From: Lytechinus pictus
Taxonomy: Eukaryota
DNA: 64,000 nucleotides
Assembly: GCF_037042905.1 (NCBI RefSeq)
Contig: NC_087246.1
Location: 21,390,001 to 21,454,000 of the forward strand
Direction of reading: 5' to 3'
Numbering within the stretch: the stretch's first letter is position 1; the number at the start of each line of letters is the position of its first letter. Shown in pieces: positions 18,405 through 56,939 of this stretch. The notes under the pieces were generated by a model, which saw only the letters and a list, made by a program, of their open reading frames with translations, had not been told where the DNA came from and did not search any database. A program made the translations under genes and the position numbers.

Positions 18405-19916
18405 ATGCAAAAGATGGCTTCATCGAAACAACTATCAGATAGTCTAGAATGTCCCATTTGTCATGATCTACTCTGCAATCCTAAACTTCTGCCATGTTCA
18501 CATTCTTTTTGCGAAAGATGTTTGACCGAACTTCACTCTTTTCAGCAAGCTGATTCCGGGTTAACTTGTCAAGTGTGTCGCCAAATTGCAAATGTTCCGG
18601 GAAATGATGTGTGTAACTTTCCGACAAACCTAATAGTCAAGTCCCTCGTCGAAGATTTCAAAAGAAGATCAGATGCTAAGGTTGAACGTATCAAAGGGAG
18701 TGGAGCAACCGCCATTCAAGCTTGCACGGTTTGTGATAGTGAGGATCAAGATATTGCAACCTACTACTGCCAGAACTGTACGGAGTTCCTTTGCGAAGAC
18801 TGCTTGCAACACCACAATAGATACAAGCGGAATGCATGCCATGAGACTGTGAAAGCAAATGACATCGAGATGGGAGTTGTCAAAATGAAATTCACATGCC
18901 CTACACATCCACAGGAACTGCAGCAGTTTGTGTGTACCACATGTCTGGTTCGAATCTGCTGCAGATGCCGGGAGGTCGAACACAAAGAAGATAGACATGA
19001 AGTCATCGCGATTGCCATGTACGAAGAGAATCAACATGAGAAAATGGCAATTATGTTGGCGAAAATTGATGAAAGAGGTGTTGATATCAATAATTACTTG
19101 TCTGAATTGCAGGAGACGGGTCAAAATGTAAAAAGTATCATTTCTCAACGACGGCAAGAAGTTAAAATTGCTTACGACACTGCAGAAGAACAATTGCGAG
19201 GGAGAAGAGATGAATTGCTCATTGAATGCAGTAATGATGGTAACAAATTCTATCAGGAATTGCAAGAAAAAGAAGAATGCATTAATACATTTCTAGGAGC
19301 TGTATCTAATCGGGCCTCTCTTGTGAACGATGGCCTGGGAAAACTTTATCAACCAGATCTGTCACTCGCTGATCATGCAGCACGATGGGGTGATCTTGAA
19401 AGTTTTCTCATGAATGAAGACATCTCCTCACTTCTCGCTCAGTTATTAAACATACGACAGCGTGCAGAATCTTTGACCTCCCGTATGGCTGCTTCTACCA
19501 TTGATCTTAGCATTGGAACTGTTCTCGTCAAGGACCATCGTCTGGATGGAGAACCAAAGAGTAGTGATGGTATAGCGATAGCTCCGAGGAAAGGGGATAC
19601 TATTTTCAAGAAGGAACCCTCCGATGACCTTGTTTCACATCCCGCTACGTCGACAAACGTAACCTCCCAAGCAAAGCCCACTTCCGACAGTCAAGCTCCT
19701 TATGAAAGTCCCTATGATCGTCTTGATCTTGGAACTCTAGAAAGGAAAATAGATGATTTACAGGCCAGCATGGCTACCAGTACGACTCCGAAAAACGAAA
19801 GCCATTCTTTAAATGGAGAACTCAGACGGACCTCCGAGTGTCCGGATATTAACAGGGCTAGTGTTCGTTCTCGATTTTTAAATCTTAGATTTAGACTTAA
19901 AAACGGAACATTCTAG
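18405..19916 (+). CDS. TRIM/RBCC E3 ubiquitin ligase-like protein, type A (TRIM56/TRIM45-like N-terminus), single coding exon
   Basis: C3HC4 RING (CPIC...CSHSFCERC...CQVC), B-box1 (CTVC...CQNC..FLC..C..HH), B-box2 (CPTH...CTTC..IC..C...H), coiled coil and S/T/P-rich tail. Splice acceptor TTATCTAG ends at 18398. Confidence 0.93.
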   Translation: MQKMASSKQLSDSLECPICHDLLCNPKLLPCSHSFCERCLTELHSFQQADSGLTCQVCRQIANVPGNDVCNFPTNLIVKSLVEDFKRRSDAKVERIKGSGATAIQACTVCDSEDQDIATYYCQNCTEFLCEDCLQHHNRYKRNACHETVKANDIEMGVVKMKFTCPTHPQELQQFVCTTCLVRICCRCREVEHKEDRHEVIAIAMYEENQHEKMAIMLAKIDERGVDINNYLSELQETGQNVKSIISQRRQEVKIAYDTAEEQLRGRRDELLIECSNDGNKFYQELQEKEECINTFLGAVSNRASLVNDGLGKLYQPDLSLADHAARWGDLESFLMNEDISSLLAQLLNIRQRAESLTSRMAASTIDLSIGTVLVKDHRLDGEPKSSDGIAIAPRKGDTIFKKEPSDDLVSHPATSTNVTSQAKPTSDSQAPYESPYDRLDLGTLERKIDDLQASMATSTTPKNESHSLNGELRRTSECPDINRASVRSRFLNLRFRLKNGTF

Positions 19917-21396
19917 CATTTTTTGTTTTTATCTTGATCAGGATATAATCAAATAAATTTATTGGTGAGAGCACGAAGCGCGATCTGAAAATGTTTGATA
20001 TTCCAACCTGAAAAACTCGACAGTTTAAGCACTCATTTAGATCAAGACATGTATTTCAATAAAACGAGCATGAATACTGGGATGATTTTTTTAATAGATT
20101 TATTCCGAAACTGGGCATTCTTTTCACTTTTCGTAATCATGAAAAGAACGGGTGTCTCCTAAATAAATGATGCGAATTTAAATTTTGGGGATTTAGACCC
20201 AAAACGGGAAATTCTAATCAAACTTTGTTAATATTAGACATGATGTGTATTTAACTTAACAATTATTGTGAATGCAAAGCGATAAGAAATATTTAATATA
20301 GGCCTTCTGACCTGGAAAGGTGACGTTTCATGAACTGTTTTGGGGAATCCATGAAGAGGATACGCATCTCGCTAATCAAATAATGCTCGCGCGTAGCGCG
20401 AGCTGAAAATTGTTTATATTTAGCACTGTTTTAAATAACATAAACAAAAAGAAAAAGAAATGGACAAATCGAATCGCGAACATATTGAAATATTTGTATT
20501 TATTTACTTGAAAACAAGATAATTTAAGTGACTCAATTGTTTGAATATCCTCTTGAGCAGATAATTATCTCACTCAAGGCAATGAGAGCGCGAAACGTAA
20601 GCGAAATTTTTATTATAATGACCAGATTTTTATATTTTCCAATTATTCCCCTCACCTTGTTTCTTCCTCGTTTTATCTTTTTAATCTTTTTTACCCTCCC
20701 CATCCATCCTAGATCCGCCTCTGACCACAATTTATTGCATATAATGAAATATATATTGTATTTTTGTGTACTCTTTTCGATTTTAAAGCTGGGCAATTCC
20801 ATAAAACGATAAACCTTTTTGTACGTCCGACCCCCATTTTTCTCAAGTCTTACTTCCCTTCATAAACTGACCAAGTCATGGTCAATTAGAGAACAGTACA
20901 GACTGTCAAAAGAACAAACAATCAGAGACAAAATGAAACATACAGTAAGCCTTGCAATTAATTGTAAATTTTCAACAGACCGCTTGCCTGCTTCTTGTTT
21001 CAACATCTATAAATTAATCTACCAGAGTAAAGTTGCAACTGAAATTTTAATTTATTTATTGCAAATGTTTTTTGCAATCAATTGCAAACTGACATAATTA
21101 CGATGAATAATAGATACAGAAGAAAAGGGAAATGTCAGCAGTATAAGTCGTAGTAACTGTCGCAGTAGTTACTACTTAGTTATGTAATTGGAAATATTGT
21201 TGTAATCTTATAACGGTGTGTGTGTGCAGGTATTTATCCTAGAACACGAGTGGTATCCCAATTTTATTGAATATAGCATAGAAAGGATGACAATCTATAT
21301 AGCATATTTAAGACAAACATTTCATGGGTAAAAGGTGAAATTTTAAGATAAGTAATATAAATAGATAAATGTTCTGTGACTTCAAGTCACAGAACC

Positions 21397-21489
21397 TTTG
21401 TGGCGTTACCTGCATCAAATGGCAAAACTGTCAAGAAACTTGTTAGATCACTAGAGGAAGCGAAGAAACTCTCATCATCTACTAGATAA
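21397..21489 (+). pseudogene. Probable C-terminal remnant of LINE ORF1
   Basis: Open frame from the 5' junction, FVALPASNGKTVKKLVRSLEEAKKLSSSTR*, followed by an AT-rich spacer before ORF2. Assigned by position. Confidence 0.5.
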
Positions 21490-21651
21490 AAATAGAGATT
21501 TGATATGACAGATGAAATGCAATTAACTCTGGAAGTTGTTGACTTGAACAGAAAATTCCATAGACTTTGATATTTGTATTTGTTATATATATATATATTT
21601 TGTTATATATATATATTTTTTGTTTTGTATATTTTTCCTCAGAAATGCCAA

Positions 21652-24600
21652 ATGTCTTCTAACTGTAACTGTGTATTATGTAGCAGGCAATGTAACTTAA
21701 CTTGTAACGATTGTTTCTTATGTAGGCCTTTAAGAAATGAACAGGAATCTGAAACTAGTTTTGATGAAAATGATGGGTACTTTGAAAATTTGATAAATAA
21801 TAAATATTATACCCCTACGGAATTCGGAAATGTCTTGAAATTACATGGTGAAAAAAATCTGATTTTGGCAAATTTCAATTGCCGTAGTTTAAAGTGTAAT
21901 TTTGAGACATTCACTAATTGTCTTGATGAAATTGGTCAGAAATTGTCATTTATTGGTACTTGTGAAACATGGCTCAATAATGAGGAAGAACATGAATGTA
22001 TGATTCCAGGTTATACATTTGTAGGCAAACACAGAAATAATAAAAGAGGAGGAGGCGTAGGTATGTATATAAATGATAACATGAAATATATTAAACGCCC
22101 AGACTTGGTCACATTTACTGAAAATATAGAAAGCCTGTTCATTGAAATTCCAAATAAGATTAAGAATTATATTGTAGCTGTGATGTATCGTCCGCCAAAT
22201 CGAAAAATTGTAGATGCTTTAAACGATATTAGTGGAAGTATGAGTAAGATTGCAGGAGAAAATAAAGAATGCATAATAATGGGAGACTTTAATGTCGATT
22301 TTCTCAAAAGAAATGAAAACATTGACACAGCAGATTTTTTCAATAGCTTCGTTACTTTCTCATACTTACCTTTTATTCATAACCCAACAAGAATTACCAA
22401 CACTAGTGCGACGACTGTCGATAATATATTGTATAACTTTCCTGAAAAAGTTATTCAAAGTGGTATTGTAATTACGGACGTTAGTGATCATTTGACACCA
22501 TTTATTGTACTGGAAAATAATAACTTAAATAAGGAAAAAGATATTGAAATTGAAAAAATAGATTACAGTGATGAAAATATAAACCTATTTTGTAGTGAAC
22601 TAAGCAAAGTAAATTGGGATGTTTTGAACGCAATTGACAATGTAAACATAAGGTATGATTGTTTTCTGAAACTGTATAGAGATGTTTATAATAGATATTT
22701 TAGTGCAAAGATAAAGAAAAAGAAAGTAAACACAAAAAGAAAACCATGGATAACGAAAGATATCATAAACCTAAGTAAACGAAAACATGCTCTATACAAA
22801 AAATACCTGAAGGGTAAATCTGATACATGTGAAAACGCCTATAAAAGGTGCCGTAATGATCTCGGTAACTTGATAAGAGAAAAGAAACGCGAGTATTTTC
22901 ACACGAAATTTGCGAAACTACAAGGTAATATGAAAGGGACATGGAATGTTATAAACCAGACTTTAAATAGAAATATATCGAAAACAATTGTAAGAGGGTT
23001 AGAAATAAATGGTAGTACAATAACTGATCAACAGGAAATAGTCAATGAGTTCAATGACCATTTCACTTCAGTAGGTGTGAAGCTAAGAGAAAACATCAAC
23101 AGTAATAGCACAGAAAATTCATTTAGAGAGTGTATGACTGGTCATTTTGAAAAGTCGTTGTTTTTACATCCTGCTACGGAGAGGGATATTTTAAACGTTG
23201 TCCTGAAACTTGATGTAAGTAAAGGTCCAGGGTATGATTACATTCACCCCAAAGTCTTGAAGAAATCTATTCATATAGTCTTGACTTCTCTTTGTAATAT
23301 AATTAATTTGGCCATAGAACGTGGTATATTTCCTGATGCACTCAAAATCGCCCGAGTAACTCCGGTTTTTAAAAGTGGTAATACCTCTTCACTAAATAAT
23401 TATAGACCTATATCAGTATTATCAATTTTCAGTAAGATCTTTGAAAAAATTATATATAATAAGTTGATTGTTTTTATTGAAAATAATAACATTTTATTCG
23501 AAAAGCAATTTGGTTTTAGAAAAAACCATACTACTTGCCATGCACTTTTAAAATTTGTCGATAGCATATCTCAGGCTTTTGAGTGCAATGAATTTTTAAT
23601 CAGTATATTTTTAGATCTATCAAAAGCTTTTGATTGTATTGATTTTAATATTTTATTCCATAAATTGTATTTTTATGGAATTAGAGGGACTCCATTGTTA
23701 TTATTGAAAAGTTATTTATTAAATCGTAAGCAATATGTGAGCATTGGCAATAATACATCAGCATATAGCAATATACAAATGGGTGTACCTCAGGGATCTA
23801 ATCTTGGCCCATTATTATTTTTATTGTATATAAATGACTTGCCAAGTGTTAGCAGTATTTTATCATTTATTCTCTTTGCTGACGACACAACAATATTTTT
23901 ATCTGGTAATGATCCTTTTAATATGAATTTTATATTAAATACTGAAATAGCCAAAATTCAACGATGGTTTCTTGCCAATAAACTTTTTATTAATTTCGAA
24001 AAAACAAATTATGTTATTTTTAAAACACATAATAAACATATTGATAACAGTGCAATACGAATAACAATTGCCAATAAAGCAATAAAGCAGGTTAATCAAG
24101 TAAAATTCTTAGGAGTAATTCTTGATGAAAATATGACATGGAAATATCATATAGATTACATTTGTAAAAAGATTTCTAGAGTAATTGGAGTATTGAACAG
24201 AGTCAAAAAAGTTTTACCATTACGCATCCTTGTAAATATATATAATACCTTGATCTTGCCACATTTGAACTATTGTCTAATTATCTGGGGTGGCTGTGCA
24301 TCATATTTATTCCAAAGGATATATGTGATTCAAAAACGTGCAATAAGGGTAATAACAAATTCCTTTTTTAGAGCTCATACACAGATTTTATTTTTTAAGC
24401 TAAAACTTTTAAAGCTAAATGAACTTTATGAATCGCAAATTATTTTATTTATGTACAAATATTTCAATTTAAATTCTATTTTTCCATCTTGTTTTGATAC
24501 TTATTTTATATTTAATAGCAGTATAAATAATTATGTAACGAGAAATTCAAACAAATTATATATACCGTTCTTTCGTTATACGCTTTCTAAATCTACAATT

Positions 24601-24714
24601 CGTTATAAAGGACCAAACTTGTGGAATAATTTACCCGATACTTTAAAATTATCTGTTACATTCTCATCATTGAAACGTAGATTGAAACAAAACCAACTGT
24701 CTACTTATAGTTAA
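21652..24714 (+). CDS. LINE ORF2: APE endonuclease plus reverse transcriptase (1020 aa from first ATG)
   Basis: EN motifs NCRSL, ETWL, GGGV, YRPP, GDFN, SDH. RT motifs QFGFR, FLDLSKAFD, GVPQGS.LGPLLF, FADDT. No stops or frameshifts. The track start at 21574 is a TTG in a TA-rich spacer. Confidence 0.95.
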   Translation: MSSNCNCVLCSRQCNLTCNDCFLCRPLRNEQESETSFDENDGYFENLINNKYYTPTEFGNVLKLHGEKNLILANFNCRSLKCNFETFTNCLDEIGQKLSFIGTCETWLNNEEEHECMIPGYTFVGKHRNNKRGGGVGMYINDNMKYIKRPDLVTFTENIESLFIEIPNKIKNYIVAVMYRPPNRKIVDALNDISGSMSKIAGENKECIIMGDFNVDFLKRNENIDTADFFNSFVTFSYLPFIHNPTRITNTSATTVDNILYNFPEKVIQSGIVITDVSDHLTPFIVLENNNLNKEKDIEIEKIDYSDENINLFCSELSKVNWDVLNAIDNVNIRYDCFLKLYRDVYNRYFSAKIKKKKVNTKRKPWITKDIINLSKRKHALYKKYLKGKSDTCENAYKRCRNDLGNLIREKKREYFHTKFAKLQGNMKGTWNVINQTLNRNISKTIVRGLEINGSTITDQQEIVNEFNDHFTSVGVKLRENINSNSTENSFRECMTGHFEKSLFLHPATERDILNVVLKLDVSKGPGYDYIHPKVLKKSIHIVLTSLCNIINLAIERGIFPDALKIARVTPVFKSGNTSSLNNYRPISVLSIFSKIFEKIIYNKLIVFIENNNILFEKQFGFRKNHTTCHALLKFVDSISQAFECNEFLISIFLDLSKAFDCIDFNILFHKLYFYGIRGTPLLLLKSYLLNRKQYVSIGNNTSAYSNIQMGVPQGSNLGPLLFLLYINDLPSVSSILSFILFADDTTIFLSGNDPFNMNFILNTEIAKIQRWFLANKLFINFEKTNYVIFKTHNKHIDNSAIRITIANKAIKQVNQVKFLGVILDENMTWKYHIDYICKKISRVIGVLNRVKKVLPLRILVNIYNTLILPHLNYCLIIWGGCASYLFQRIYVIQKRAIRVITNSFFRAHTQILFFKLKLLKLNELYESQIILFMYKYFNLNSIFPSCFDTYFIFNSSINNYVTRNSNKLYIPFFRYTLSKSTIRYKGPNLWNNLPDTLKLSVTFSSLKRRLKQNQLSTYS

Positions 24715-25121
24715 TAATTCCAACTGCCTATCTGAGGGGGGGGGGGTTGATTTCGATGTGTTCGTGTCTGTTTTGTTTGTTTGTTTTTTGGCCACTATTC
24801 TATTTGTGTTTTTAATCGTACCATAATGTAGTAATCAAGGGAGTCGGCTTTGACAGGTCAATGGCCTTTCTGACTTCCTACATCCGCTACATTTTATTTT
24901 CATTTCTTTTATATTTTGACAATTTTTTATCGCTTATACTGTGATTTAAATTATTGTACTCCTTTGTTGTTGTATACTTGTACATATGTTTTTAAAGGAT
25001 GTCAAATAAATGAATTGAATTGAATTGAATTATGAGGTAAAATTTAGAGGAAAATTACAAATTATCATTCAATGACATGCAGTTTCTGATGGAATATTTA
25101 CACAGGTGAAATCGACTACTG

Positions 25122-28059: not shown

Positions 28060-28155
28060 ACACCTTGCTCACGGACATAGGTGACGTGGGGATCGAACCC
28101 CAGCCTTTCAAACGTGTATTCATGCGCCTTAGACCGCTCGGCCACGGTGCCACTT
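28060..28155 (-). mobile_element. tRNA-derived SINE head (paralog at about 46135-46235)
   Basis: Minus strand GTGGCCGAGCGG ... GGTTCGATCCCC ... CCGTGAGCAAGG. Confidence 0.75.
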
Positions 28156-29781
28156 CCACTATAAAGCAGACATGGCCGTGAATGATTCCAGCAAAGATAT
28201 TACTAAATATGGTCCAAATATATAGGTTTTTCTTCATCTAACTACTATGCTTTTTCTAATGACATTTTCTGCGCAAATCATTTAAAAATATCTGGAATCT
28301 CCCCCCCCCCCCCGATAATCAAACTTTTCTACGTGCAAAGGTATGTAATCACCAAGCCGTCTACAAGAAAATGGCGTCATGCAGAAACCTTTAAGGTGAG
28401 CAGTCCGATAAAGCACATTTTCAATGTTCTCAATTTAGTTGTTCTAACTAAAATATACAGCTAGTAAGCTGTTACAATGAATGAAACTGGTATAGTTGTA
28501 TTTTGCACATGACTGATTTTTTTAATCGTACACTTACAATAAGATATTAGAGGGTTCAAAGTCACATATTGATGTAAATAGTGAGTGATTGCCATGTGAG
28601 GTAATATGTAACCAGTAGAAAATCGGGGATTTCGGTGTCGAGTACCGTCAGTATAGATTAAGGAACACTGGAGCAATAAATTCATCATATTACTGCTCGT
28701 GTTCTTTCAAATGGTTAAATGTTACTGAGTGTTCGGGTGGTATCGTCGTCCTTTCCGGGATGCCTACAAAATCGTCTTCAATAGTTATTACAATATTTTC
28801 TAACACTGTGTGAGTAAATTTAATATTGATTTGATTTATGTAGTCTAATTTTCTATTCTAAGATATTAAAATTCATGGATGTATGTAATTTCTTTCAGTG
28901 AACGACTAGATCAAATCAAATCAAATCAAATCAGACTAGATAGGCGTACATCAGTCTGGTCATGATGCATATACAGGTTCATAATAATTATACAGGCATA
29001 TAACCGCAAGTCTCGAGACGTTTGGGCCCTGATGTTCATAAAACTTCTACCAATAATGTAATCGGGGAAGGGGAAGGGTCGCTCTCTTTTCTATCGACGT
29101 ATCCGCAACCGCGTTCAGAAAAGGCGATGAGAATTGTCATTTTCCAGCACATGGCGTCATCGTTGTCTTTTTGGACAACGAGATTTATTCTTTTTCAACG
29201 CCGTTGATCGGCAAACATCCCTTAATATGGTAGGGTAGGCCTTCTATACTACTTCATTAACAAAAACAAATTTGTTATATATCGGTCTTGGTTATTGGGA
29301 AAATAATTCATGATGAAACGTTATACTTCATTTTCTCGAGGTTGTGTATTTCTCAAGTTTCAATGAAAAAGATGCCAAGGAATATTGTGTATCAAGAGTA
29401 AATATTATTTTATTATAAAAAAAATATGTATCAAATGATTAGAATGGCTAGTTGATTGTTTTGCTTAAGAGTTCAATGGTTTAGTTAGTAGAGTGGTGGT
29501 CTCGCAATCCGGGTTCAAAAACCAGTCCGTGCGCTGAGGCCCTTTGGTAAGTCATTTATCCACATTACTAGCAGCATGCACAGAGAAATGACACTGCCAA
29601 AGTTCTCACATCTATCCCATATTTATTTTAATTTCATGATGTTAGCTACATGCAAAGCCTACACAAACATGAGGTATAGATGCGATCATAATTGTATTAA
29701 CAATTTTCTGAAAGTAGCACACTTTTAGTTTTTTTAATTAACAATGAGACGTCGATTATCTCTTTTGTTATCTAGAATCGG

Positions 29782-31293
29782 ATGCAAAAGATGGCATCAT
29801 CGAAACAACTATCAGATAGTCTAGAATGTCCCATCTGTCATGATCTACTCTGCAATCCTAAACTTCTGCCATGTTCACATTCTTTTTGCACAAGTTGTTT
29901 GACCGAACTTCACTCTTTTCAGCAAGCTGATTCCGGGTTAACTTGTCCAGTGTGTCGCCAAAATGCAAATGTTCCTGGAAATGATGTGAGTAACTTTCCA
30001 ACAAATCTTATTGTCAAGTCCCTCGTCGAAGATTTAAAGAGAAGGTCTGATGCTAAGGCCGAGCGTATAAAAGGGGATGGAGCAACCGCCATTCAAACTT
30101 GTACGGTTTGTGATGGTGATGAACAAGACATTGCAACCTACTACTGCCAGAACTGTTCAGAGTTCCTTTGTGAAGATTGCTTGCAACACCACAATAGATA
30201 CAAGCGGAATGCATGCCATGAGACTGCGAAAGTAATAGATATTGTGGCGGGAGTTGTCAAAAAGAAATTCACATGCCCTGAACATCCACAGGAACTGCAG
30301 CAGTTCGTGTGTACTACATGTCTCGTTCGGATCTGCTGCAGATGTCGGGAGGTCGAACACAAGGAAGGTGGACATGAAGTCATCGAGATAACTGGGTATG
30401 AAAAAAGTCAGCAAGAAAAAATAGAACGTCTTTTACTGAAAATAGAGCAAACATTTGTTGACATTCCAAATGACTTATCTTCTGTTAATGAGAAGCTTCG
30501 AACAGTGAAAAATGTTATGTCCCAACGACGACAAGAAATCATAAATGCTTACGACAACGCAGAAGAAATATTGCAAAGAAAGAGAAATGAATTATTCGAA
30601 GAATGTAGTACGCATGAAAAAACATTCTGTCAGAAGTTGGAAAATATCATTGGGTGCTATTATGACTTCATAGAGACCTTTTCTGAAAATGTCACGCTTG
30701 TAAACGAGGGGGCAAGAAGTCTACACCTACCAGACCAATCACTGGCTGAGCATACAACACGAGTCAATGAGCTTGAGAGAAGTCTCAAAGCTGAAGCCCT
30801 CTCACCACTTCTTGCTCAGGCATCAAACGTAGTACTCCGAGCAGAATCGATTGTTTTTCGTCCGGCTGATCATACCATTGATCTTGGTACAGTTCATCAT
30901 CAACTTGAAGTGGAATTGGAAGATTCTATTTGTGAAGTAATCTGCATGGCTTCAACGGTAGAGGATACTCCCGAAAAGAAAGACGTGGAAGATCTTCATT
31001 CAACCCATTCTTCTGTATTTAAATTCATGGAGCCCGAATCAAAATCCCTTCCAGACAGTGATGATGACATTCTTGACTTTGATTTTTATCTTCGTGATCT
31101 TCATGATCTAACCCGCATAACTGAACAGTTGGAACGAAACAAATTGTCCGTTGACACGTCTGATCTTTCTGATACCAGTATATCTGACACATCAGACGTG
31201 TCCGCGCGTCCGGAAAGTAACAGAAGTTCAAGGCGTTCTTTTTTTGCAAATCTGAAGGCTCGATTACGATCCGGGACTGGAGACCAATCTTGA
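29782..31293 (+). CDS. TRIM/RBCC protein, type B copy 1
   Basis: RING, two B-boxes, coiled coil and acidic D/S-rich tail. Acceptor TTATCTAG ends at 29775, 6 nt before the ATG. Confidence 0.93.
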   Translation: MQKMASSKQLSDSLECPICHDLLCNPKLLPCSHSFCTSCLTELHSFQQADSGLTCPVCRQNANVPGNDVSNFPTNLIVKSLVEDLKRRSDAKAERIKGDGATAIQTCTVCDGDEQDIATYYCQNCSEFLCEDCLQHHNRYKRNACHETAKVIDIVAGVVKKKFTCPEHPQELQQFVCTTCLVRICCRCREVEHKEGGHEVIEITGYEKSQQEKIERLLLKIEQTFVDIPNDLSSVNEKLRTVKNVMSQRRQEIINAYDNAEEILQRKRNELFEECSTHEKTFCQKLENIIGCYYDFIETFSENVTLVNEGARSLHLPDQSLAEHTTRVNELERSLKAEALSPLLAQASNVVLRAESIVFRPADHTIDLGTVHHQLEVELEDSICEVICMASTVEDTPEKKDVEDLHSTHSSVFKFMEPESKSLPDSDDDILDFDFYLRDLHDLTRITEQLERNKLSVDTSDLSDTSISDTSDVSARPESNRSSRRSFFANLKARLRSGTGDQS

Positions 31294-34152: not shown

Positions 34153-34153
34153 T

Positions 34154-36188: not shown

Positions 36189-36221
<33 letters not shown>

Positions 36222-40655: not shown

Positions 40656-40963
40656 CTCGTATCCCTACTTTTAAGTTCTGACTTGAACTCGACCATTGAG
40701 TAGATTCCCAGTTTCGAACTTGACAATGGTTCTACCGATTTGTCAAATCGATCAGGCATCATCAAGCCACTATTGGACTTGATTGGTCTATAGTTCGGAA
40801 AAGTATGATCAATACACCTTGATCGGGTCGATCAACAATTAGCAGGCTCAGGCCTCATATTCGACTATTTTAGGACAGCATAGTTACCACTGCCGAAATG
40901 ATTACTCAATCAAGCCCATTCACCATTTTCCGTTCGATCGGTTGTCATCGGAAGTTGGACCTG

Positions 40964-41140
40964 GGGGCCGTTTCATAAAGCTGTTCGTAAGTTAAGAGTG
41001 ACTTCAAGGACGACTGGTGATCATTTCTTGTGGTAAGTGATATTTACCATTTGGTGGGTATTTAGCGCGTAAGAAAGGTTCACCAGTCGTTCTTAAAGTC
41101 GCTCCTAACTTTAATACGAACAGCTTTATGAAACACCCCC
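40964..41140. mobile_element. Harbinger-type hairpin MITE
   Basis: GGGGCCGTTTCATAAAGCTGTTCGTA... / ...TACGAACAGCTTTATGAAACACCCCC, with CTG duplicated in a CCTGG context. Confidence 0.8.
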
Positions 41141-41293
41141 CTGGTCGGTAACCAACATCGGGCCAATCTTCCTTTGCTGCTTGGACATCACTCTGTTTTC
41201 TTACACTAATATATTGAACATATCATAAATATTTAAATAGGAAAGGGCAGTGTAAACGCTGAAGACAGGATTAACCAGCAAGGGGGAGGGGAC

Positions 41294-42612
41294 CAATGGC
41301 GGATCCAGCTTTTGTCAGTAGGGCGGAAAAGGGATTTTTCGCCCACATTTTCCTGATGGCCACTTAAAGCTATTCTTTGTCGTTTTCCTTTTAGGGGGTA
41401 TTCATAGCTAAAGACTCAAAGTTTATTCTTACGAAGGTAAGGTATCTCAAAAAGCTTATAAATGATGCGAGCGCGAAGCTCAAACCAAGCTCATTTTTTG
41501 TTATGTATTCAAACCTTTAAACTTAACATTCTAAGCAATTTATCAAATAATGATCAAGATGCGTATCTAATTTAACGAACAATGCGAGGTCGAAGCGGTA
41601 TCTTAAATTTTCGATAAATTGACCTGAAAAGGAACCTGTATGGGAGTGTTTGCAGTTGCTCATGAAGAGGATTCATATCTCACGTGTCGAGTAATGGAAG
41701 CGGGAAGCGCGAGCTGAAAATGTTTGATATAAAAAAAAAACTGGACAGTTTACAGCACTGATTCTTTTTTTTTTAGATTTAGACCTAAAAACGGAACATT
41801 CTAAGCATTTTTGTTTTTATCTTGATCAGGATATAATCAAATAAATTTATTGGTGAGAGCACGAAGCGCGATCTGATAATGTTTGATATTCCAACCTGAA
41901 AAACTCGACAGTTTAAGCACTCATTTAGATCAAGACGTGTATTTCAATAAAACGAGCATGAATACTGGGATGATTTTTTTTAATAGATTTATTCCGAAAC
42001 TGGGCATTCTTTTCACTTTTCGTAATCATGAAAAGAACGGGTGTCTCCTAAATAAATGATGCGAGTTTAAATTTTGGGGATTTAGACCCAAAACGGGAAA
42101 TTCTAATCAAACTTTGTTAATATTAGACATGATGTGTATTTAACTTAACAATTATTGTGAATGCAAAGCGATAATAAATATTTAATATGGGCCTTCTGAC
42201 CTAGAAAGGTGACGTTTCATGAACTGTTTTGGGGAATCCATGAAGAGGATACGCATCTCGCTAATCAATTAATGCTAGCGCGTAGCGCGAGCTGAAAATT
42301 GTTTATATTTAGCACTTTTTTAAATGACATAAACAAAAAGAAAAAGAAATGGACAAATCGAATTGCGAACATATTGAAATATTTGTACTTATTTACTTGA
42401 AAACAAGATAATTTAAGTGACTTAATTGTTTGAATATCCTCTTGAGCAGATAATTATCTCACTCAAGGCAATGAGAGAGCGAAACGTAAGCGAAATTTTT
42501 ATTATAATGACCAGATTTTTATATTTTCCAATTATTTCCCTCACCTTGTTTCTTCCTCGTTTTATCTTTTTAATCTTTTTTACCCTCCATATCCATCCTA
42601 GATCCGCCTCTG
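41294..42612. mobile_element. Old hAT-like element (only its right part survives in the first copy, at 19886-20723)
   Basis: Termini CAATGGCGGATCC / AGATCCGCCTCTG and internal GCGAGCGCGAAGC-type repeats. No clear TSD. Confidence 0.65.
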
Positions 42613-44015: not shown

Positions 44016-47000
44016 CAGGTTCATCAAAGCTAATACGTTATTTTCAATTACGTCATCGGTCGATTTATAGTCGGTATCGTTAGTGTGACTGTGCCATACG
44101 TGTATAGAACTGGTAGGCCCTGAACTATTATAGATATAATTATATGCATGGTGTTACAGTATGATGAGGAATAGAGACAACAACAGCAACAACAAATTCA
44201 CAAAGGAAACACCTGCAGTTAAAAGTGGTAGTTATTGCTGTTGCGGTTACTGATTAGTTGTGTAATTCGATAGTTTTTAAACCTTAATCCGTATGGTCAT
44301 TAGCGACCATGCAATGACCATGCCAGTAATCATGATTATACAATGGGGAACGATTTAGCATATTAATGCGATATGAATTCATGATAAAAACGTTACATAT
44401 AAAGTCAGTAATTTTTAGGTGTATTTGAGAGGAAATATGCCAAAGTTATAATTGACACATTGATGATATAATTCATGAAATCTTTAAAGTTACGAGACAT
44501 GAAAAGCTTCCTTTCCACTTTCAATAATTGCATTTAGATACTACGAATAAATAAAATTAATAAAAAAAAATTATGTTATATGATTGTACTTCTAGAGTTG
44601 CACTGTATGAATTGGCGCATACACATGGGTATCGTAAGTATATGATAACACAATTTATTGCCTTTCAATTGACATAGTGAAATACAATTTTATGCAAATA
44701 CGATGATACGACTTTTTGTGATCAGTAAACATACAATTAAAGGTGTCTTGCAATTTACTAATACCGTCTTCGTCATATCGCAGTTTTGATTTCTTTTGCA
44801 GTCTTGTATATGAAACGTAAATAAACTTCCCTAAATGAAACCAAAAAAAAACCACTCATGCCAAGCTCATACCAACATGAATAAGATTTAAAAAATACAA
44901 CATTCGAAAATATACAGCCTTCACAGGAGTATTGAAGAAAAAAAACTTACGGGAAAATAAATAAGAAATGAAGAGAGAGGGGATAACGGCCTTGAATCAT
45001 TTGCGGGAAGCCTCTTTAATTTCAAGGTTGGCTTATTTTATATCATCGCCTTATGATTGACGAAAACCATGACATTCCTAAGACTAGTCTTCTTCAATCG
45101 TATGTAATCATTTCATTTCAAACACGTCCTGATCAGTCTTAATTTTTTAACCATGTTCTTTTCTCCATGCTAATCATTTCGTAAATTATGTTATCTACCA
45201 ACTGCACAACATGTCTACCATTGTCATGTTTCAGGCTCTACGTTATTTTAGTTGCTAATAATGATAATCGTTGATATTGATGATGACTTTAATCAAACGG
45301 TCCTTGGTCTTGTCTGAATGATTTTCTAAAATGATTATGTATGGCAGAGGTACCACACACAGTCAACGAAAAATTTGGCAACTTTATCAGATTATCATGA
45401 TTTTGTAATTTCAAACAATACTATTTTGTAAGATTCTAACACGAATTTTATCACATGCATTTCAATAACGGCGCTTACCAATGGTAAGAAAATCACGAAA
45501 TTGTGTTATTTTCTTTGTAATTATGATTGTTTGTCATACGATGCTTTTTAGTTATGTTTTATTCAACTTGTTTTATAATTCGCCGTATTCCAAAATTCAA
45601 TTTTTATGACATAATTATTCATTCTCACTTACGTGTGAATTGTGAAGAAAAATAAATCATGTATCGCCCAAACATGATTATTGCATTCTAAAACTGCTTA
45701 CATAAGCTCCTGATTCCACATTAGAAAGGAAAACGTTAGTGCACAAAATAATGCTGTGTAACGGTCAAAAACATCATTCACTCATGTAGTCACCTAAAAT
45801 AGACAGACTTTTCATTGTCATCACTGATAGATAGTAACTGCGTCTTCGAAGTATTTTATTTTCACTGGTTATCAGTAAACTATTTTGCTGAATAAACACT
45901 CATTTCGTGAGCATCGCAAATGGGTTTTGCATTGCGCTTCTCAACAGCTCCAATTCTATGACGTCATCGTATGTCAAAAGAGTTTACGTGCATTTTGTAT
46001 GCATTTTTTTTCTTCTTGATTTCGATATTTATTTTCGATTTTCCCTTTTATAAACGAATGCACACCTAGTTACTAAGAGAGCATACCGCATTTCCATTTA
46101 TTTGCATGTAGGATAAAAGAGCACTGTCGATTAAACGCCTTGCTCACGTCACGGGCATAGCTGACATGGGGATCGAACCCCAGCCTTTCAAACGTGTATT
46201 CATGCGCCTTAGACCGCTCGGCCACGGTGCCACCTCCACAATAAAGCAGACATGGCCGTGAATGATGCAAGCAAAGATATTACTAAATATGGTCTAAATA
46301 TACAGGTTTCTCTTCATCTAATTACTAAGCTTTTTTAAATGACATTTTCTGCGCAAATCATTAAATAATATCTGGAATCCCCCCCCCCCCCGATAATCAA
46401 AATTTTCTACGTGCAAAGGTATGTAATCACCAATGCAGAAACCTTTAAGGTGAGCAGTCCGATAAAGCAAATTTTCAATGTTCTCAATTTAGTTGTTCTA
46501 ACGGAAATACACAGCTAAGTAAGCTGTTACAATGAATGAAACTGGTATAGTTGTATTTTGCACATGACATATTTTTTTAATCGTACACTTACAATAAGAT
46601 ATTAGAGGGTTCAAAGTCACGGATTAATGTAAATAGTGAGTGATTGCCATGTGAGGTAATATGTAACCAGTAGAAAATCGGGGATTTCGGTGTCGAGTAC
46701 CGTCAGTATAGATTAAGGAACACTGGAGCAATAAATTCATCATATTACTGCTCGTGTTCTTTCAAATGGTTAAATGTTACTGAGTGTTCGGGTGGTATCG
46801 TCGTCTTTTCCGGGATGCCTACAATATCGTCTTCAATAATTATTACAATATTCTCTAATACTGTGTGAGTAAATTTAATATTGATTTGATTTATGTAGTC
46901 TGATTTTCTATTCTAAGATATTGAAATTCATGGATGTATGTAATTTCTTTCAGTGAACGACTAGATCAAATCAAATCAAATCAAATCAAATCAGACTAGA

Positions 47001-47835
47001 TAGGCGTACATCAGTCTGGTCATGATGCATATACAGGTTCATAATAATTATACAGGCATATAACCGCAAGTCTCGAGACATTTGGGCCCTGATGTTCATA
47101 AAACTTCTACCAATAATGTAATCGGGGAAGGGGAAGGGTCGCTCTCTTTTCTATCGACGTATCCGCAACCGCGTTCAGAAAAGGCAATGAGAATTGTCAT
47201 TTCCAGCACATGGCGTCATCGTTGTCTTTTTGGACAACGAGATTTATTCTTTTTCAACGCCGTTGATCGGCAAACATCCCTTAATATGGTAGGGTAGGCC
47301 TTCTATACTACTTCATTAAAAAAATTTGTTATATATCGGTCTTGGTTATTGGGAAAATAATTCATGATGAAACGTTATACTTCATTTTCTCGAGGTTGTG
47401 TATTTCTCAAGTTTCAATGAAAAAGATGCCAAGGAATATTGTGTATCAAGAGTAAATTGTATTTTATTATAAAAAAAATATGTATCAAATGATTAGAATG
47501 GCTAGTTGATTGTTTTGCTTAAGAGTTTAATGGTTTAGTTAGTAGAGTGGTGGTCTCGCAATCCGGGTTCAAAAACCAGTCCGTGCGCTGAGGCCCTTTG
47601 GTAAGTCATTTATCCACATTACTAGCAGCATGCACAGAGAAATGACACTGCCAAAGTTCTCACATCTATCCCATATTTATTTTAATTTCATGATGTTAGC
47701 TACATGCAAAGCCTACACAAACATGAGGTATAGTTGCGATCATAATTGTATTAACAATTTTCTGAAAGTAGCACACTTTTAGTTTTTTTAATTAACAATG
47801 AGACGTCGATTATCTCTTTTGTTATCTAGAATCGG

Positions 47836-49356
47836 ATGCAAAAGATGGCATCATCGAAACAACTATCAGATAGTCTAGAATGTCCCATCTGTCATGATCT
47901 ACTCTGCAATCCTAAACTTCTTCCATGTTCACATTCTTTTTGCACAAGTTGTTTGACCGAACTTCACTCTTTTCAGCAAGCTGATTCCGAGTTAACTTGT
48001 CCAGTGTGTCGCCAAGATGCAAATGTTCCTGGAAATGATGTGAGTAACTTTCCAACAAATCTTATTGTCAAGTCCCTCGTCGAAGATTTCAAAAGAAGGT
48101 CTGATGCTAAGGCCGAGCGTATAAAAGGGGATGGAGGAACCACCATTCAAACTTGTACGGTTTGTGATGGTGATGATCAAGACATTGCAACCTACTACTG
48201 CCAGAACTGTTCAGAGTTCCTTTGCGAAGATTGCTTGCAACACCACAATAGATACAAGCGGAATGCATGCCATGAGACTGCGAAAGTAATAGATATTGTG
48301 GCGGGAGTTGTCAAAAAGAAATTCACATGCCCTGAACATCCACATGAACTGCAGCAGTTCGTGTGTAGCACATGTCTGGTTCGGATCTGCTGCAGATGTC
48401 GGGAGGTCGAACACAAGGAAGGTGGACATGAAGTCATCGAGATAACTGGGTATGAAAAAAGTCAGCAAGAAAAAATAGAACGTCTTTTACTGAAAATAGA
48501 GCAAACATTTGTTGACATTCCAAATGACTTATCTTCTGTTAATGAGAAGCTTCGAACAGTGAAAAATGTTATGTCCCAACGACGACAAGAAATCAAAAAT
48601 GCTTACGACAAAGCAGAAGAAATATTGCAAAGAAAGAGAAATGAATTATTCGAAGAATGTAGTACGCATGAAAAAACATTCTGTCAGAAGTTGGAAGATA
48701 TCATTGGGTGCTATTATGACTTCATTGAGACCTTTTCTGAAAATGTCACGCTTGTAAACGAGGGGGCAAGAAGTCTACACCTACCAGACCAATCACTGGC
48801 TGAGCATACAACACGAGTCAATGAGCTTGAGAGAAGTATCAAAGCTGAAGCCCTCTCACCACTTATTGCTCATGCATCAAACGTAGTACTCCGAGCAGAA
48901 TCGATTGTTTTTCGTCCGGCTGATCGTACCATTGATCTTGGTACTGTTCAGGTCATGGATCATCAACTTGAAGAGGAATTGGAAGATTCTATTTGTGTAG
49001 CAACCTGCATGGCTTCAACGGTAGAGGATACTCCCGAAAAGAAAGACGTGGAAGATCTTCATTCAACCCATTCTTCTGTATCTAAATTCATGGAGCCCGA
49101 ATCAAAGTCCCTTCCAGACAGTGATGATGACATTCTTGACTTTGATTTTTATCTTCGTGATCTTCATGATCTAACCCGCATAACTGAACAGTTGGAACGA
49201 AACAAATTGTCCGTTGACACGTCTGATCTTTCTGATACCAGTATATCTGACACATCAGACGTGTCCGCGCGTCCGGAAAGTAACAGAAGTTCAAGGCGTT
49301 CTTTTTTTGCAAATCTGAAGGCTCGATTACGATCCGGGACTGGAGACCAATTTTGA
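47836..49356 (+). CDS. TRIM/RBCC protein, type B copy 2
   Basis: Near-identical to 29782-31293 but 3 aa longer (TVQVMDHQ versus TVHHQ). Acceptor ends at 47829. Confidence 0.93.
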   Translation: MQKMASSKQLSDSLECPICHDLLCNPKLLPCSHSFCTSCLTELHSFQQADSELTCPVCRQDANVPGNDVSNFPTNLIVKSLVEDFKRRSDAKAERIKGDGGTTIQTCTVCDGDDQDIATYYCQNCSEFLCEDCLQHHNRYKRNACHETAKVIDIVAGVVKKKFTCPEHPHELQQFVCSTCLVRICCRCREVEHKEGGHEVIEITGYEKSQQEKIERLLLKIEQTFVDIPNDLSSVNEKLRTVKNVMSQRRQEIKNAYDKAEEILQRKRNELFEECSTHEKTFCQKLEDIIGCYYDFIETFSENVTLVNEGARSLHLPDQSLAEHTTRVNELERSIKAEALSPLIAHASNVVLRAESIVFRPADRTIDLGTVQVMDHQLEEELEDSICVATCMASTVEDTPEKKDVEDLHSTHSSVSKFMEPESKSLPDSDDDILDFDFYLRDLHDLTRITEQLERNKLSVDTSDLSDTSISDTSDVSARPESNRSSRRSFFANLKARLRSGTGDQF

Positions 49357-52219
49357 GTCCCTAGTTCTCAATAATTAATAAGTTTCAGTATTATATGTGT
49401 TGGTGTTAACGAGATATCATGTAGACTGCTGCCACTGGACATGTGGCGAGACCAAGATAGACTAATGTCACGAATGAGGATAATCTATTATTTGCATCTG
49501 ACCACGGAATGAGAGTGCTTACGTTGTTATTGCATATGTGTTGCAAATTGGAGCATATCTGCAGTTGGAAAACTAGACATGGCTATGACACCTGTCCCGG
49601 GGGCCACTTCCATTGACAAGTGGATAACATTCGCAACCAAAAAACACGTAAAAAGGATGTCTTTTTCAAGATAGGGCACGTTACGTAAGTAACGTAATAA
49701 GGGTGTCAAAAACAATAAAATAATGAAAAAAGGGTATCTATTTTCGCTAGGAAAGTTACGTGTTTAGGGTCAAATTTGCGAGGGTGTAAAAAATTAAGAC
49801 TAAAATGTTTTATAAAGGATGTACTTTTTGCCCTAAGAGTCAACACTACGTGTTTAGAGTACGATTATCGCGCGAGACGTGGGAGATGGGGCTGTACTAA
49901 ACCCAATCAGGTGGTAAACCGACGACCGACGACAGTGACATAACAATAAAAATATCGTTGTACTTGTTTAGCGGTTCAATTCAGGGAATACTTGCCAAGA
50001 GAATTGTTTTGTTTCCAATACTTGGTAAGGGTAGGGTTTCACACACCAATACTAAGGGTGCATTTTCAGAATATGGAAAATACGTGTTTAGTGTGCTTTT
50101 TGAGACCCCATGGTCGCGCATGGTATCCACTCGTCAATGGAAGTGGCCCCCACGGGCACCTGGTTTTAACTGTCGAACTAGTTTACCTCGGATATCTATT
50201 GACGTTATCACTTGAGACATTGTTTTCGCAAACTTGGTAAATAAAATAAAATATGTTTCATGGATAATATTGGGGAAAATAATGCAACACTTACCCGTCG
50301 ATAATTAATTTTCAATCCTACTTCTTTCATATATGGATACTATTCAGAAAACAGACATTGGAATACTTGTAACCATGTAAATTCTTAACATTAAAAAAAG
50401 TGGTAGGACACTCGAAAGTGGATTAATTGACAACCTTTCGGAAAGTTGAATAAGGGACAAGGCCTTTCCGAATAAGAAAAAGCGTGAATTTTTTTGAAAT
50501 TCAGTAAATCGATACGTGTATATAAATGTGAATATATGTCGATCTCTCATTATTTTTTGGGGAAACCATATATATTAACAAAAACATTTATTGCTTCGGA
50601 ATAAAATGTACATTTCCCCCAAATTCATAAAGATTAATTGAATGAAAGGTGAGAGGAGTCGATAGCATTAGTCATCGCATTTGAATGTACCACCACGGTT
50701 ATAAACATTACATAAAATCAAAGAATTTTCTTATAAACATCTGTTTTTTGGTAAATTAACAATTTGTTCTCCATTTATCTGTATAAATTCATATCATCTT
50801 GATATCAGTAGGTATTTTATTTTCCGAGACGTCATCATGGTTACTGCTGCTGTTTCATGACGGGATTTTTTAAAATCATCATGTATACTGTATAAGTAAT
50901 TATAATGTGTATGAGGTCCACGCGTTGGCCTAACAATCGGGCACAGATCCAGCGGAGGGTGGTACAAGATACAAGTATTTTATATTTTCTCAAAATTGTG
51001 AATTTCTTTTCAAATCTAAACATCACTCATTTTAAAGAAATGTTATTCACTTGTCAAATTTTGAGCGAGAACAATTCGTGGTAATAGGTAGTTTTCGCGC
51101 ATTTAAAACTCTTTACAACGCATCGATTCCTTTGAAAATGAAATTAAAATCAAAATGAGGCTTTTGTCGAAAGTTAATTAATTTTAGAAGTTTTGATAAA
51201 TTTTTAAATTACAAAAAAGCTTTTTTTCTAATATTTATTACAAAAATGATACTATCATTATTTATGCTATTACGAAGTAGGAATTATCGACTTTTACAGC
51301 CATTGATGAAAAAAATGTATGATTACAACGTTAGACTGAAAGGTTGCCTAATAAACGAGGGTATCACACGTATATCATTAGAATTATAGTGAATTTAACT
51401 AATAGCAAATTTTATTGCCTTTTATTTTAAAGTATGTATGTATAAAACTTTTATGATCAGTAAACATACATTAAGGGTGGCTTGGATTGACCTTATAGCG
51501 TCTCCGTCTAATTGCAGTTTTCCATCCTTTTGCAGTCTTGTACGTGAAATGAAAATGAACTTTACTTCACATACCCCATCTGGAAATTAGACCAAGCAGT
51601 TTTAGGCCAAGTGTGCATAGGCCACTCATGTCAAAGTCATATAACATCGTGAATATGGTAAAAGGACAAAATTCGAACTTCAAAAAATAAAATTAAAGAG
51701 AAAAAAGAGATAACGGCCTGGAATCATTTGCGTGAAGTCTCTTCAATTTCAAGGTTGAGTTGTTGTATATCATTGCCTTATTATACTTGACGGAAACCAC
51801 GGCATTCCCAAAGACCTTTTTCGTCTATGTTCGGAAATGATCTTCGGATTCATAACAGTCATATTCTGATTAGTTTCGATCTTTCATATTCCAAACCACG
51901 ATATTCATATTACTTTATCAAATGTGATATTGACATTGTATTGATGCAAACATGCTTCAATAAAAGGCTATTGTAGACAGTATAGTGACAATCACATTCG
52001 TCATTCTATTGAGGGTGCATTTGTATTATCAACGCTCGTTGATGTTTAGGATCGAGTTGCAAAGAGGACAGCCCCTAATATTGTGCTGAAATGATGAGTA
52101 ATTACAAATATAATTTCGCAGTATAATCTGAGTTCATTATCATCATGATTAAGATGATAATGATGATGTTGATGATGATAATTCATATCATTATCATTGT
52201 GAGTAGTAGTGGTAGTAGC

Positions 52220-52284
<65 letters not shown>

Positions 52285-55582: not shown

Positions 55583-56939
55583 ATGGCTACAGCAAGGCAA
55601 TTCTCAGACCATCTAAAATGCCCAATCTGCCGTGATCTACTTTGCAATCCTAAACTTCTGCGATGTTCACATTCTTTTTGCTTAAGTTGTTTGACCAAAT
55701 ATCACTCTTCTCAGCAAGCTGTTTCCAGATTAACTTGTCCAGTGTGTCGCCAAGTTGCAACGGTTCCGCGAAATGATGTGCGTAACTTTCAAACAAATTA
55801 TATTATCAAGTCCCTTGTCGAAGATTACAAAGGGAGATCAGATGCTAAAGGCCGAACGTATCAAAGGGAGTGGAGGAACCACCATTCAAACTTGCACGGT
55901 TTGTGATGGTGATGATGAAGACATTGCAACCTATTACTGCCAGAACTGTTCGGAGTACCTTTGCGAAGACTGTCTCCAACACCACAATAGATACAAGCGG
56001 AATGCATACCATGAGACTGTGAAAGTAATAGATCTTGAGATGGGAATTGTCAAAAAGAAATTCAAATGCCCTAAACATCACGAGGAGCTGCAGCAGTATG
56101 TGTGTACTACATGTCTGGTTCGGATCTGTGGCAGATGTCAAGAGGTCAAACACAAGGAAGATGGACATGAAGTCATCCTTATGACAAAGTATGAAGAAAG
56201 ACAACAAAATACAATAGAATGCCTTTTAATGAAAACAGACCAAACCTCCGCGGATATTGAAAATCGTTTATCTTCTGTGAATGAGAAGCTTGGAACCGTT
56301 GAAAATATTGTGGCTCAACTACGACAAGAAATTGGAAACGCTTACGACATTGCAGACAAAAATTTGCAAAGGAAGAGAAATGTTTTATTAGAAGAATGCG
56401 ATAGGCATTACGACACATTCCGTTTGCAGTTTGAAGATATAAGTAAGTGCTATCGTAACTTCCTACAAACTTTACCTGCTCTGAAGGCCACGCTCGAAAA
56501 CGACATGAAAGATGGGGTAAGGAATATACACAACCCAGACTATTTACTCAAAGAGCATACAGCACGAGTCAATGAGCTTGAAAGAAGTCTCAAAGCTGAA
56601 GCCATCTCCCCGCTTCTTGCTCAGACATCAAACGTAGTACTCCGAGCAGAATCGATTGTTTTTCGTCCGGCTGATCGTACCATTGATCTTGGTACTGTTC
56701 TGTCTGTTCAGGCCATGGATCATCAGCTTAATACGGAATTGGAGGATTCTATTTCTGGAGCGACCTGCATGGCTTCAGCAATTGAGGATGATCCCGAAAA
56801 GAAAGACGTGGAAGATCTTCATTCAACCCGTTCAGGACGGTCTGTGCGATCTTTCTTTACAAATCTGAGGCGTCAGGCTCGAATACGGATCAGTACTCGA
56901 GATCGACCTCGACTCCCGAATTCTCAGTTTTATTTGTAG
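55583..56939 (+). pseudogene. TRIM/RBCC type C, split by a +1 frameshift (pseudogene, split gene or sequence error)
   Basis: GATGCTAAAGGCC (55841-55853) versus GATGCTAAGGCC in paralogs. The RING is in ORF 55583-55906, and the B-boxes and coiled coil are in ORF 55755-56939. Confidence 0.85.

Follow-up and report, generated by a model that had tools for sequence, protein, structure and literature searches.

A tandem cluster of TRIM genes lies in a 64,000-nt stretch of the Lytechinus pictus genome (NC_087246.1, positions 21,390,001 to 21,454,000; G000:C2:21390001-21454000 in our genome coordinates; hereafter, the window), and its members are propeller-less descendants of a TRIM-NHL gene. The genes encode the RING, B-box1, B-box2, and coiled coil (RBCC) of the TRIM superfamily followed only by a short tail, and we read them, with a probability of about 0.7, as an echinoid-specific subfamily of TRIM E3 ligases that arose from a TRIM-NHL gene and lost the NHL propeller. 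They have been remodeled by recombination, their RBCC part is constrained, and copies of one type are transcribed and spliced; ligase activity, dimerization, and a role for a C-terminal motif are suggested by sequence features and structure models.

All five copies in the window, g1A, g2B, g3A, g4B, and g5 (A and B denoting types), are open reading frames (ORFs) on the + strand, in agreement with an earlier sequence-only reading that had described five tandem same-strand genes (5/5; Table 1). That reading had also called the zinc ligands intact in all five; g5 does keep its ligands but, unlike g1-g4, is not an intact gene: one extra base at 55850 shifts the frame between RING and B-box1, so that the ligands are split between a RING piece (55583-55849, ATG at 55583), which keeps its ligands, and the rest of the gene (55851-56939), read in a different frame. 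The genome annotation gives g5 a RING-less product of 388 amino acids (aa; P0010); its tail is 79 aa long and retains the C-terminal motif described below. Pfam placed RING, B-box1 (ANCHR-like), and B-box2 in that order in the window genes, with zf-RING_UBOX and zf-C3HC4 above cut-off in g1-g4 and zf-B_box matching as two stretches after the RING, the arrangement of the TRIM/RBCC superfamily. The ANCHR-like match at residues 107-148 (20.3-20.6 bits in g1-g4, 26.8 in g5) lay under its cut-off of 27 bits throughout and is supportive only. In a 19-sequence family alignment all 24 ligand columns were invariant, comprising 8/8 RING ligands (C16, C19, C31, H33, C36, C39, C55, and C58) and 16/16 B-box ligands (columns 107-146 and 165-198). 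Ile18, the hydrophobic contact to the ubiquitin-conjugating enzyme (E2), was likewise invariant, and Arg59, after the last Cys pair, nearly so; both positions are known to be important in RING E3s.

The best named protein matches came from L. pictus (98-100% identity), L. variegatus (89%), and Strongylocentrotus purpuratus (about 48-63%). The RefSeq labels for these genes, TRIM56-like, TRIM45-like, TRIM33-like, TRIM3-like, and TRIM23-like, derive from best matches over the RBCC region only, where identity to vertebrate TRIMs is 23-31%. TRIM45 carries a filamin domain, TRIM33 a PHD and a bromodomain, and TRIM23 an ARF domain; filamin, an NHL-like region, PHD-bromodomain, and ARF are all absent here, and no orthology with TRIM45, TRIM56, TRIM33, or TRIM23 was found. 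In phylogenies the genes grouped with echinoid paralogues, and in the databases searched the family was restricted to echinoids, which bears out the suggestion of a lineage-specific family.

No conventional C-terminal domain follows the coiled coil, as the sequence-only reading had proposed. The IDL(SI)GTV linker that it described is present, followed by tails of about 80-135 aa, and Pfam gave zero matches to the window genes after the coiled coil. A tblastn search with three NHL-type C-domains, from the NHL-bearing neighbor g9 and from arrays elsewhere in the genome (both described below), against the 134-kb cluster plus 20 kb upstream matched only g9, with nothing propeller-like in or downstream of g1-g8 across these 154 kb. 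The RefSeq models of L. pictus and L. variegatus stop at the same codons, one RNA contig (48930-49668) spans the stop codon unspliced, and no joint from the coding exon to a downstream exon was seen in the RNA contigs. Hidden downstream exons were thus rejected on the tblastn result and these contigs. The idea that the tail might stem from an NHL-coding region read out of frame was addressed by three-frame comparison, which yielded no match to the Lytechinus tails; an in-frame relic of NHL blade 1 is kept only in an S. purpuratus copy. AlphaFold (AF2) modeled a confident coiled coil (203-313) and L2 helices (319-357) in g4B, with a predicted local distance difference test score (pLDDT) below 50 over 359-506 and only two short helices, 436-458 and 487-499, within that predicted disordered tail. 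Among 1.84 billion representative proteins, searched exhaustively by phmmer, the B tail matched one, the family's own representative; homologues of the A tail were limited to Lytechinus A genes, and the ESM Atlas gave no usable tail match. Taken together, these results support the absence of a hidden C-terminal domain, and the genes are RBCC-only.

A six-frame search of the whole 812-Mb genome placed all relatives with >44% identity in one region, C2:21.408-21.513 Mb, in which the family extends past the window to nine genes in about 105 kb, four of them outside it. The last of these, g9, has about 245 additional C-terminal residues relative to the RBCC-only genes. This C-terminal domain was not recognized by Pfam, its NHL being too divergent, but was modeled as an all-beta propeller with a mean pLDDT of 91.4, and its best Foldseek matches in the PDB were the NHL domains of TRIM2, TRIM3, TRIM71, Thin, and Mei-P26 (TMq 0.72-0.79). 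The coiled-coil/linker tree contains two sister clades, one RBCC-only and one NHL-bearing, the latter consisting of g9, L. variegatus Lv629, and S. purpuratus P0014. An intact RBCC-only copy from S. purpuratus (L044:18069-19418, 450 aa) aligns in frame with g9 residues 360-434 (E 5e-14), running about 50 residues past the start of g9's shared NHL-type C-domain. Because the g9 C-domain folds as a TRIM2/3/71-type NHL, the two clades are sisters, and S. purpuratus retains this in-frame relic, the window genes are propeller-less descendants of a TRIM-NHL gene. Since the NHL is absent from g1-g8 and present only in g9, they descend from TRIM-NHL class VII and are not members of it. The best solved sequence relatives of their RING/B-box half are TRIM3 and TRIM2; identity of that half to g9 is only about 44%.

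Arrays on C9, C14, C8, and at C2:31.6 Mb of the L. pictus genome contain >85 further RBCC ORFs, each with a single exon and a length of 600-690 aa (343 first-look candidates); these end in the same ~245-aa, Pfam-invisible domain, for which the NHL propeller fold was modeled in g9, and NHL-less truncated ORFs occur in these large arrays too. In S. purpuratus, a g9-like family has several truncated members (L044:1563-3422 and 10001-11400; AAGJ06000002.1 at ~41.74 Mb); the remaining NHL residues of P0015 (422 aa) match g9 543-628 only, and the P0012 copy has in-frame stops, around which the older model P0011 splices.

Comparison with L. variegatus (CM031016.1, 46.15-46.24 Mb) showed a different gene order, consisting of a 385-aa copy, A1, A2, B, and an intact 487-aa gene of the g6 type, followed on the opposite strand by a 461-aa gene and then a 629-aa NHL gene. 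A1 (L042:17211-18743; CM031016.1 46157156-46158688) is an A gene joined to the 3′ end of a 385-type gene: its A-type RBCC and tail run to 'YESPFDRLDLE', continue with the coiled-coil end and linker of the 385-aa gene, and terminate in GSCL, without the C-terminal motif. Chimeric genes occur in both species, and pseudogenes in L. pictus. In the coiled-coil tree, types A, B, g6, and g8 each contained both Lytechinus species, with within-species duplicates as sisters, and S. purpuratus P0011 and P0012 fell outside all Lytechinus types; given these groupings, the types predate the Lytechinus split and copy number is not conserved. Each type has an orthologue in L. variegatus, which counts in part against the sequence-only reading, for which conserved one-to-one orthologues were to be a refutation, but no one-to-one orthology with Strongylocentrotus was found in this tree.

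Ratios of nonsynonymous to synonymous divergence (dN/dS) were pooled by region, with bootstrapping, across three independent L. pictus-L. variegatus (Lp-Lv) orthologue pairs. The ratio was 0.25 for the RING/B-box region (95% confidence interval [CI] 0.18-0.35), 0.39 for the coiled coil (0.25-0.64), 0.60 for the tail (0.34-1.13), and 0.77 for linker plus tail (0.49-1.30); 0 bootstrap replicates reached 1 for the RING/B-box region or the coiled coil, and the NHL-bearing g9 gave 0.32 overall. The RBCC part is therefore constrained, most of the tail is close to neutral, and no region showed the dN/dS >1 of diversifying selection between these orthologues. The proposal that specificity diversifies in the coiled coil and tail found no support in these values, which range from purifying to near-neutral throughout.

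For the B-type genes, transcription and splicing were observed when sequencing runs were aligned to window positions 46000-51999, in the contigs of public runs X1 and X6. Contigs of both runs contain a GT..AG joint (46864->47830) that removes an intron from the 5′ untranslated region (5′UTR); exon 2 begins 6 nt ahead of the ATG, with contig coverage from 47830 onwards, and because X1 depth is zero inside the intron, the X1 contigs represent spliced RNA. Genes g1-g6 and g8 share the conserved acceptor tctag|aatcgg in their upstream sequence, and from homology the corresponding g2B intron would be 28810-29775. As X1 has the letters of g2B at each of its 23 listed variant sites, and a 9-nt gap likewise agrees with g2B, this is the main transcribed copy in the X1 sample, with a minor g4B-like form. 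Raw ribosomal RNA-depleted runs X10 and X11, sampled at ~6%, contained zero reads on the gene, which is not evidence of silence; the only part of 46000-51999 with reads in these runs was a high-copy repeat at 49600-50200. Contig word depth in this repeat is in the thousands and RNA depth is 30-80 on both strands, and many reads join opposite strands at 49639/50111.

The cluster has been assembled by recombination. Self-comparison revealed a tandem duplication (25028-35809 vs. 43283-53868) and a similar relationship between g1 and g3, at 89-97% identity. Synonymous divergence (dS) was 0.025 between g2B and g4B and 0.03 between the coiled coils of g1A and g3A, below the 0.10-0.15 of Lp-Lv orthologues, so the last duplication or homogenization is younger than the species split. 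The mosaic structure of g3A shows along its length: the 5′ flank and the initial ~90 nt match g6 at 96-98% identity, nt 92-287 are about equally near g1 and g4, nt 288-487 are clearly g4B-like (94-99%), and the remainder, from nt ~490, matches g1A at 95-100% (mostly 99-100%). Gene g1A in turn resembles the B genes at both ends, with 94-98% identity over its first ~190 nt and a B-like C-terminus, RFRLKNGTF. A 1,435-bp segment present in g3 and absent from g1 provides the last 11 codons of g3A, ending in VGQGKRKARIH; the junction and this end are common to the L. variegatus A genes, g1 reads into the B-like end, and a relic of the g1-type end lies directly after the segment. An intron was rejected as the source of this 1.4-kb difference, as no GT..AG pair yields the g1 sequence from its boundaries; at the sequence level the difference is an insertion/deletion whose g3 state is shared with L. 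variegatus.

The 5′ half of the genes has a history of its own. The RING/B-box tree is star-like, and synonymous divergence between types is 0.20-0.35 over codons 1-203 versus 0.52-0.93 in the coiled coil (bootstrap P 0.000-0.021). Since purifying selection cannot lower synonymous divergence in this way, the 5′ RING/B-box module has been homogenized by gene conversion. Between g1 and g2, a long interspersed nuclear element (LINE) retains an intact ORF of 1046 aa (21574-24714) with endonuclease and reverse transcriptase; because the other duplicated unit has the empty site (43280-43283), the LINE, a young one, was inserted after the duplication. At its 5′ junction (21371-21395), an extra CACAGAA repeats, as its reverse complement, the TTCTGTG that lies upstream, which gives the junction a fold-back-like form. 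The rapid remodeling that had been suspected from the window is thus visible as species-specific duplications, chimeras, two pseudogenes, a post-duplication LINE, and 5′ gene conversion.

The tails are acidic and Ser/Thr-rich, with a body net charge of -2 to -21, although for g1A and g3A a later motif was taken as the linker and the values cover the last ~60 residues only; they end in a basic stretch of 25 residues (net +4 to +7). This end contains a motif core, [VLR]RS[FR]F.(N/S)L (RSFF.NL-type), followed by K/R-rich residues, in every L. pictus RBCC-only copy and in 4/6 L. variegatus copies; the S. purpuratus forms are IFADFFRRPKRRGT or LFKRLKRLGT. The motif persists despite tails saturated between types (dS >1, dN about 0.9). 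K/R runs such as KRKARIR presumably resemble a monopartite nuclear localization signal. An amphipathic-helix reading of the motif is not claimed, its hydrophobic moments (0.17-0.63) being inconsistent.

Solved TRIM coiled coils typically pair as antiparallel homodimers. For g4B, the fragment that spans B-box2, coiled coil, and L2 was predicted as a homodimer with a score of 0.64 versus 0.01 for the best control, passing a mark reached by 21/30 proteins solved as same-chain pairs and by 0/23 solved as single chains. The runs agreed in at least 81% of contacts, with partner pLDDT at least 73, the residue numbers in contact sum to about 523, i.e., the pairing is antiparallel, and the AF2 helix over 203-313 has a pLDDT of about 80. 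The long coiled coil is thus predicted to form the antiparallel dimer characteristic of the superfamily. Given the intact RING and B-box ligands and the E2-contact residues, the proteins most likely act as dimeric RING E3 ligases. In place of a folded recognition domain, targeting or partner docking would rely on two elements, the coiled coil, which differs by type, and the C-terminal motif, which is conserved; the basic-hydrophobic motif could be a localization or docking signal. At the level of the locus, evolution follows a birth-and-death course: genes are duplicated and fused by unequal crossing-over, some copies succumb to frameshift and stop mutations, transposons insert, and frequent gene conversion keeps the 5′ RING/B-box part near-uniform, with coiled-coil and tail cores remaining type-specific.

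Several observations weigh against this interpretation. Two of the six + strand copies are broken; the tail ratio of 0.60 is not clearly below 1, which would allow the greater part of the tail to be free of constraint; and the tail motif is missing from two L. variegatus copies and has an inconsistent helical moment. The dimer score could stem from TRIM coiled-coil structures that the model has memorized. The RNA nature of the positive runs is itself read from the spliced joint and the empty intron, and expression is low or restricted, as X10 and X11 have no reads on the gene.

Table 1. Features of the TRIM cluster, in window coordinates (continued past the window for g6) or, where marked, in protein residues.
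Feature	Position	Strand	Description	Basis
g1A	18405..19916	+	intact RBCC-only TRIM, type A, 503 aa	ORF and Pfam
LINE	21390..25027	+	about 3.64 kb, between g1 and g2, (TGAAT)n 3′ tail	
g2B 5′UTR exon (probable)	28505..28809	+	donor placed by 97% homology to g4B exon ending 46864	homology
g2B	29782..31293	+	intact RBCC-only TRIM, type B, 503 aa	ORF and Pfam; RNA contigs
g3A	38868..40376	+	intact mosaic RBCC-only TRIM, 502 aa	ORF; mosaic profile
Extra segment in g3	40339..41773	+	1,435 bp in g3, absent from g1	self-comparison
B-type 5′UTR intron	46865..47829	+	GT..AG, 965 nt	joint; X1 depth 0 inside
g4B	47836..49356	+	intact RBCC-only TRIM, type B, 506 aa	ORF and Pfam
g4B RING	residues 16-58			
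g4B B-box1	residues 107-146			
g4B B-box2	residues 165-198			
g4B coiled coil	residues 203-313			
g4B L2 helices	residues 319-357			
g4B tail	residues 359-506		predicted disordered	
g4B C-terminal motif	residues 487-499			
High-copy repeat	49600..50200	.	inverted arms; B-gene 3′ region; homologue downstream of g2B	
g5	55583..56939	+	broken copy; reading-frame ORF 55755-56939	frame analysis
g6	65596-67071	+	pseudogene; TGA in place of first B-box2 Cys, one RING Cys and one B-box2 Cys also lost	
g7		-	RBCC-only, 459 aa; beyond window	
g8		-	RBCC-only, 461 aa; beyond window	
g9	L009:766-2652 = G000:C2:21510971-21512860	-	629 aa, NHL-bearing	

Direct and inverted copies of a ~1.2-kb repeat (89-90% identity) lie upstream of the cluster at 4056-5277, 12036-13249, and 13242-13898; the ORFs of 114-143 aa inside this repeat and other ORFs of 110-144 aa in the window had no Pfam family, and there were no Rfam matches within the window. 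The L. pictus proteins P0001, P0009, P0005, and P0008, from another record of the species, are ~2% different from the window copies, and the N-terminus of P0009, a mosaic of the A type, resembles that of neither g1A nor g3A, which suggests, by sequence comparison, allelic or copy-number variation of the cluster within L. pictus.

Sea urchins serve as a reference for the expansion of innate-immune gene families. In the sequence-only reading, the genes would form a diversifying innate-immune or antiviral effector family like TRIM5/22 or the finTRIMs, with specificity in the coiled coil and tail. As in antiviral birth-and-death TRIMs, genes are duplicated in tandem and lost in a lineage-specific manner here, with species-specific copy number, the same genome has large TRIM-NHL gene arrays, and many TRIM-annotated genes of S. 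purpuratus are induced in coelomocytes stressed by ultraviolet B (UVB; PMC13043383). We nevertheless regard this account as doubtful, for there is no region with dN/dS >1 between the orthologues of the two Lytechinus species, the gene types are conserved between them, and the proteins lack a folded recognition surface of the kind on which diversifying selection usually acts. Linking the UVB-induced genes to relatives of the cluster was attempted, but the supplement gives LOC numbers and names only, and they could not be mapped; an immune role is conjecture. Short SPRY-less isoforms of TRIM5 modulate by co-assembly, and the window proteins could in principle be propeller-less modulators of this kind that have no substrates of their own and regulate g9 or the array TRIMs by B-box/coiled-coil co-assembly. 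The genes adjoin, and descend from, an NHL-bearing gene, and their RING/B-box module is uniform across paralogues, yet their coiled coils are far from that of g9 (dN 0.5-0.65) and from each other, arguing against heterodimers, and the low identity of their RING/B-box half to g9 speaks the same way; this makes such a function improbable.

It would also be conceivable that the genes are decaying by-products, truncated TRIM-NHL copies that drift to pseudogenes and whose ORFs stay open through youth and gene conversion. The frameshift in g5, the stop and two lost Cys ligands in g6, the in-frame stops of an S. purpuratus copy, the near-neutral tail, the NHL-less truncated ORFs of the big arrays, and low expression would all fit. 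An RBCC dN/dS of 0.25-0.39, clearly <1 across three independent orthologue pairs, does not, nor do intact ORFs of each type in two species together with an intact S. purpuratus copy, a C-terminal motif conserved despite saturated divergence, and spliced mRNA, and we consider mere decay very unlikely. We therefore retain the reading of a constrained, propeller-less TRIM subfamily. A stronger version of it, in which the motif, tethered by an acidic phosphorylatable tail, is the replacement for the propeller as a targeting device and defines a 'motif-guided' TRIM class, or in which the proteins regulate the TRIM-NHL arrays, seems unlikely on present evidence; were it true, the genes would belong to an echinoid intracellular defense network.

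There is precedent for TRIMs that consist of an RBCC only, for TRIM clusters that evolve by tandem birth and death, and for gene conversion between paralogues, and RefSeq already lists the genes themselves under names borrowed from other TRIMs. The locus represents an ordinary TRIM subfamily, specific to its lineage, whose C-terminal motif is modestly interesting and whose evolutionary history is clear. The sea-urchin TRIM repertoire is barely characterized. In S. purpuratus, about 140 genes are annotated as TRIMs, and many are induced in UVB-stressed coelomocytes, including TRIM56-like, TRIM2-like, and Midline-1-like genes (PMC13043383); our literature searches found no paper describing this propeller-less TRIM subfamily. 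The cluster offers a clean, datable case in which the descendants of a TRIM-NHL gene have dispensed with the recognition domain and nonetheless survived, constrained and transcribed, and in which unequal crossing-over and gene conversion build mosaics of a uniform catalytic module and type-specific coiled coils. If the motif is a targeting signal, it would represent an alternative route by which TRIM ligases find their partners.

Among known systems, RBCC-only vertebrate TRIMs share the RBCC with a non-globular C-terminus, and the RING of TRIM56 ranks among the better matches by sequence, but there is no orthology, and the loss of the C-terminal domain is independent, inside echinoids. The vertebrate clusters (TRIM5/6/22/34, finTRIM; PMC2657112) likewise form same-strand arrays with lineage-specific duplication and loss and recombination between paralogues; those families, however, carry a B30.2/SPRY with positively selected loops, whereas the cluster has no recognition domain, no SPRY by Pfam, and regional dN/dS values of 0.25-0.77. 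The TRIM-NHL ligases (TRIM2, TRIM3, TRIM32, TRIM71/LIN-41, Drosophila Thin, and Mei-P26) have the same order of RING, B-box1, B-box2, and coiled coil, from which the five window genes differ in having neither NHL nor filamin and a disordered tail in the place of the propeller. The TRIM-NHL arrays of the same L. pictus genome share the RBCC scaffold (30-35% identity), the single coding exon, and the tandem arrangement; the arrays keep the NHL-like propeller, whereas the cluster has lost it and carries no diversifying signal.

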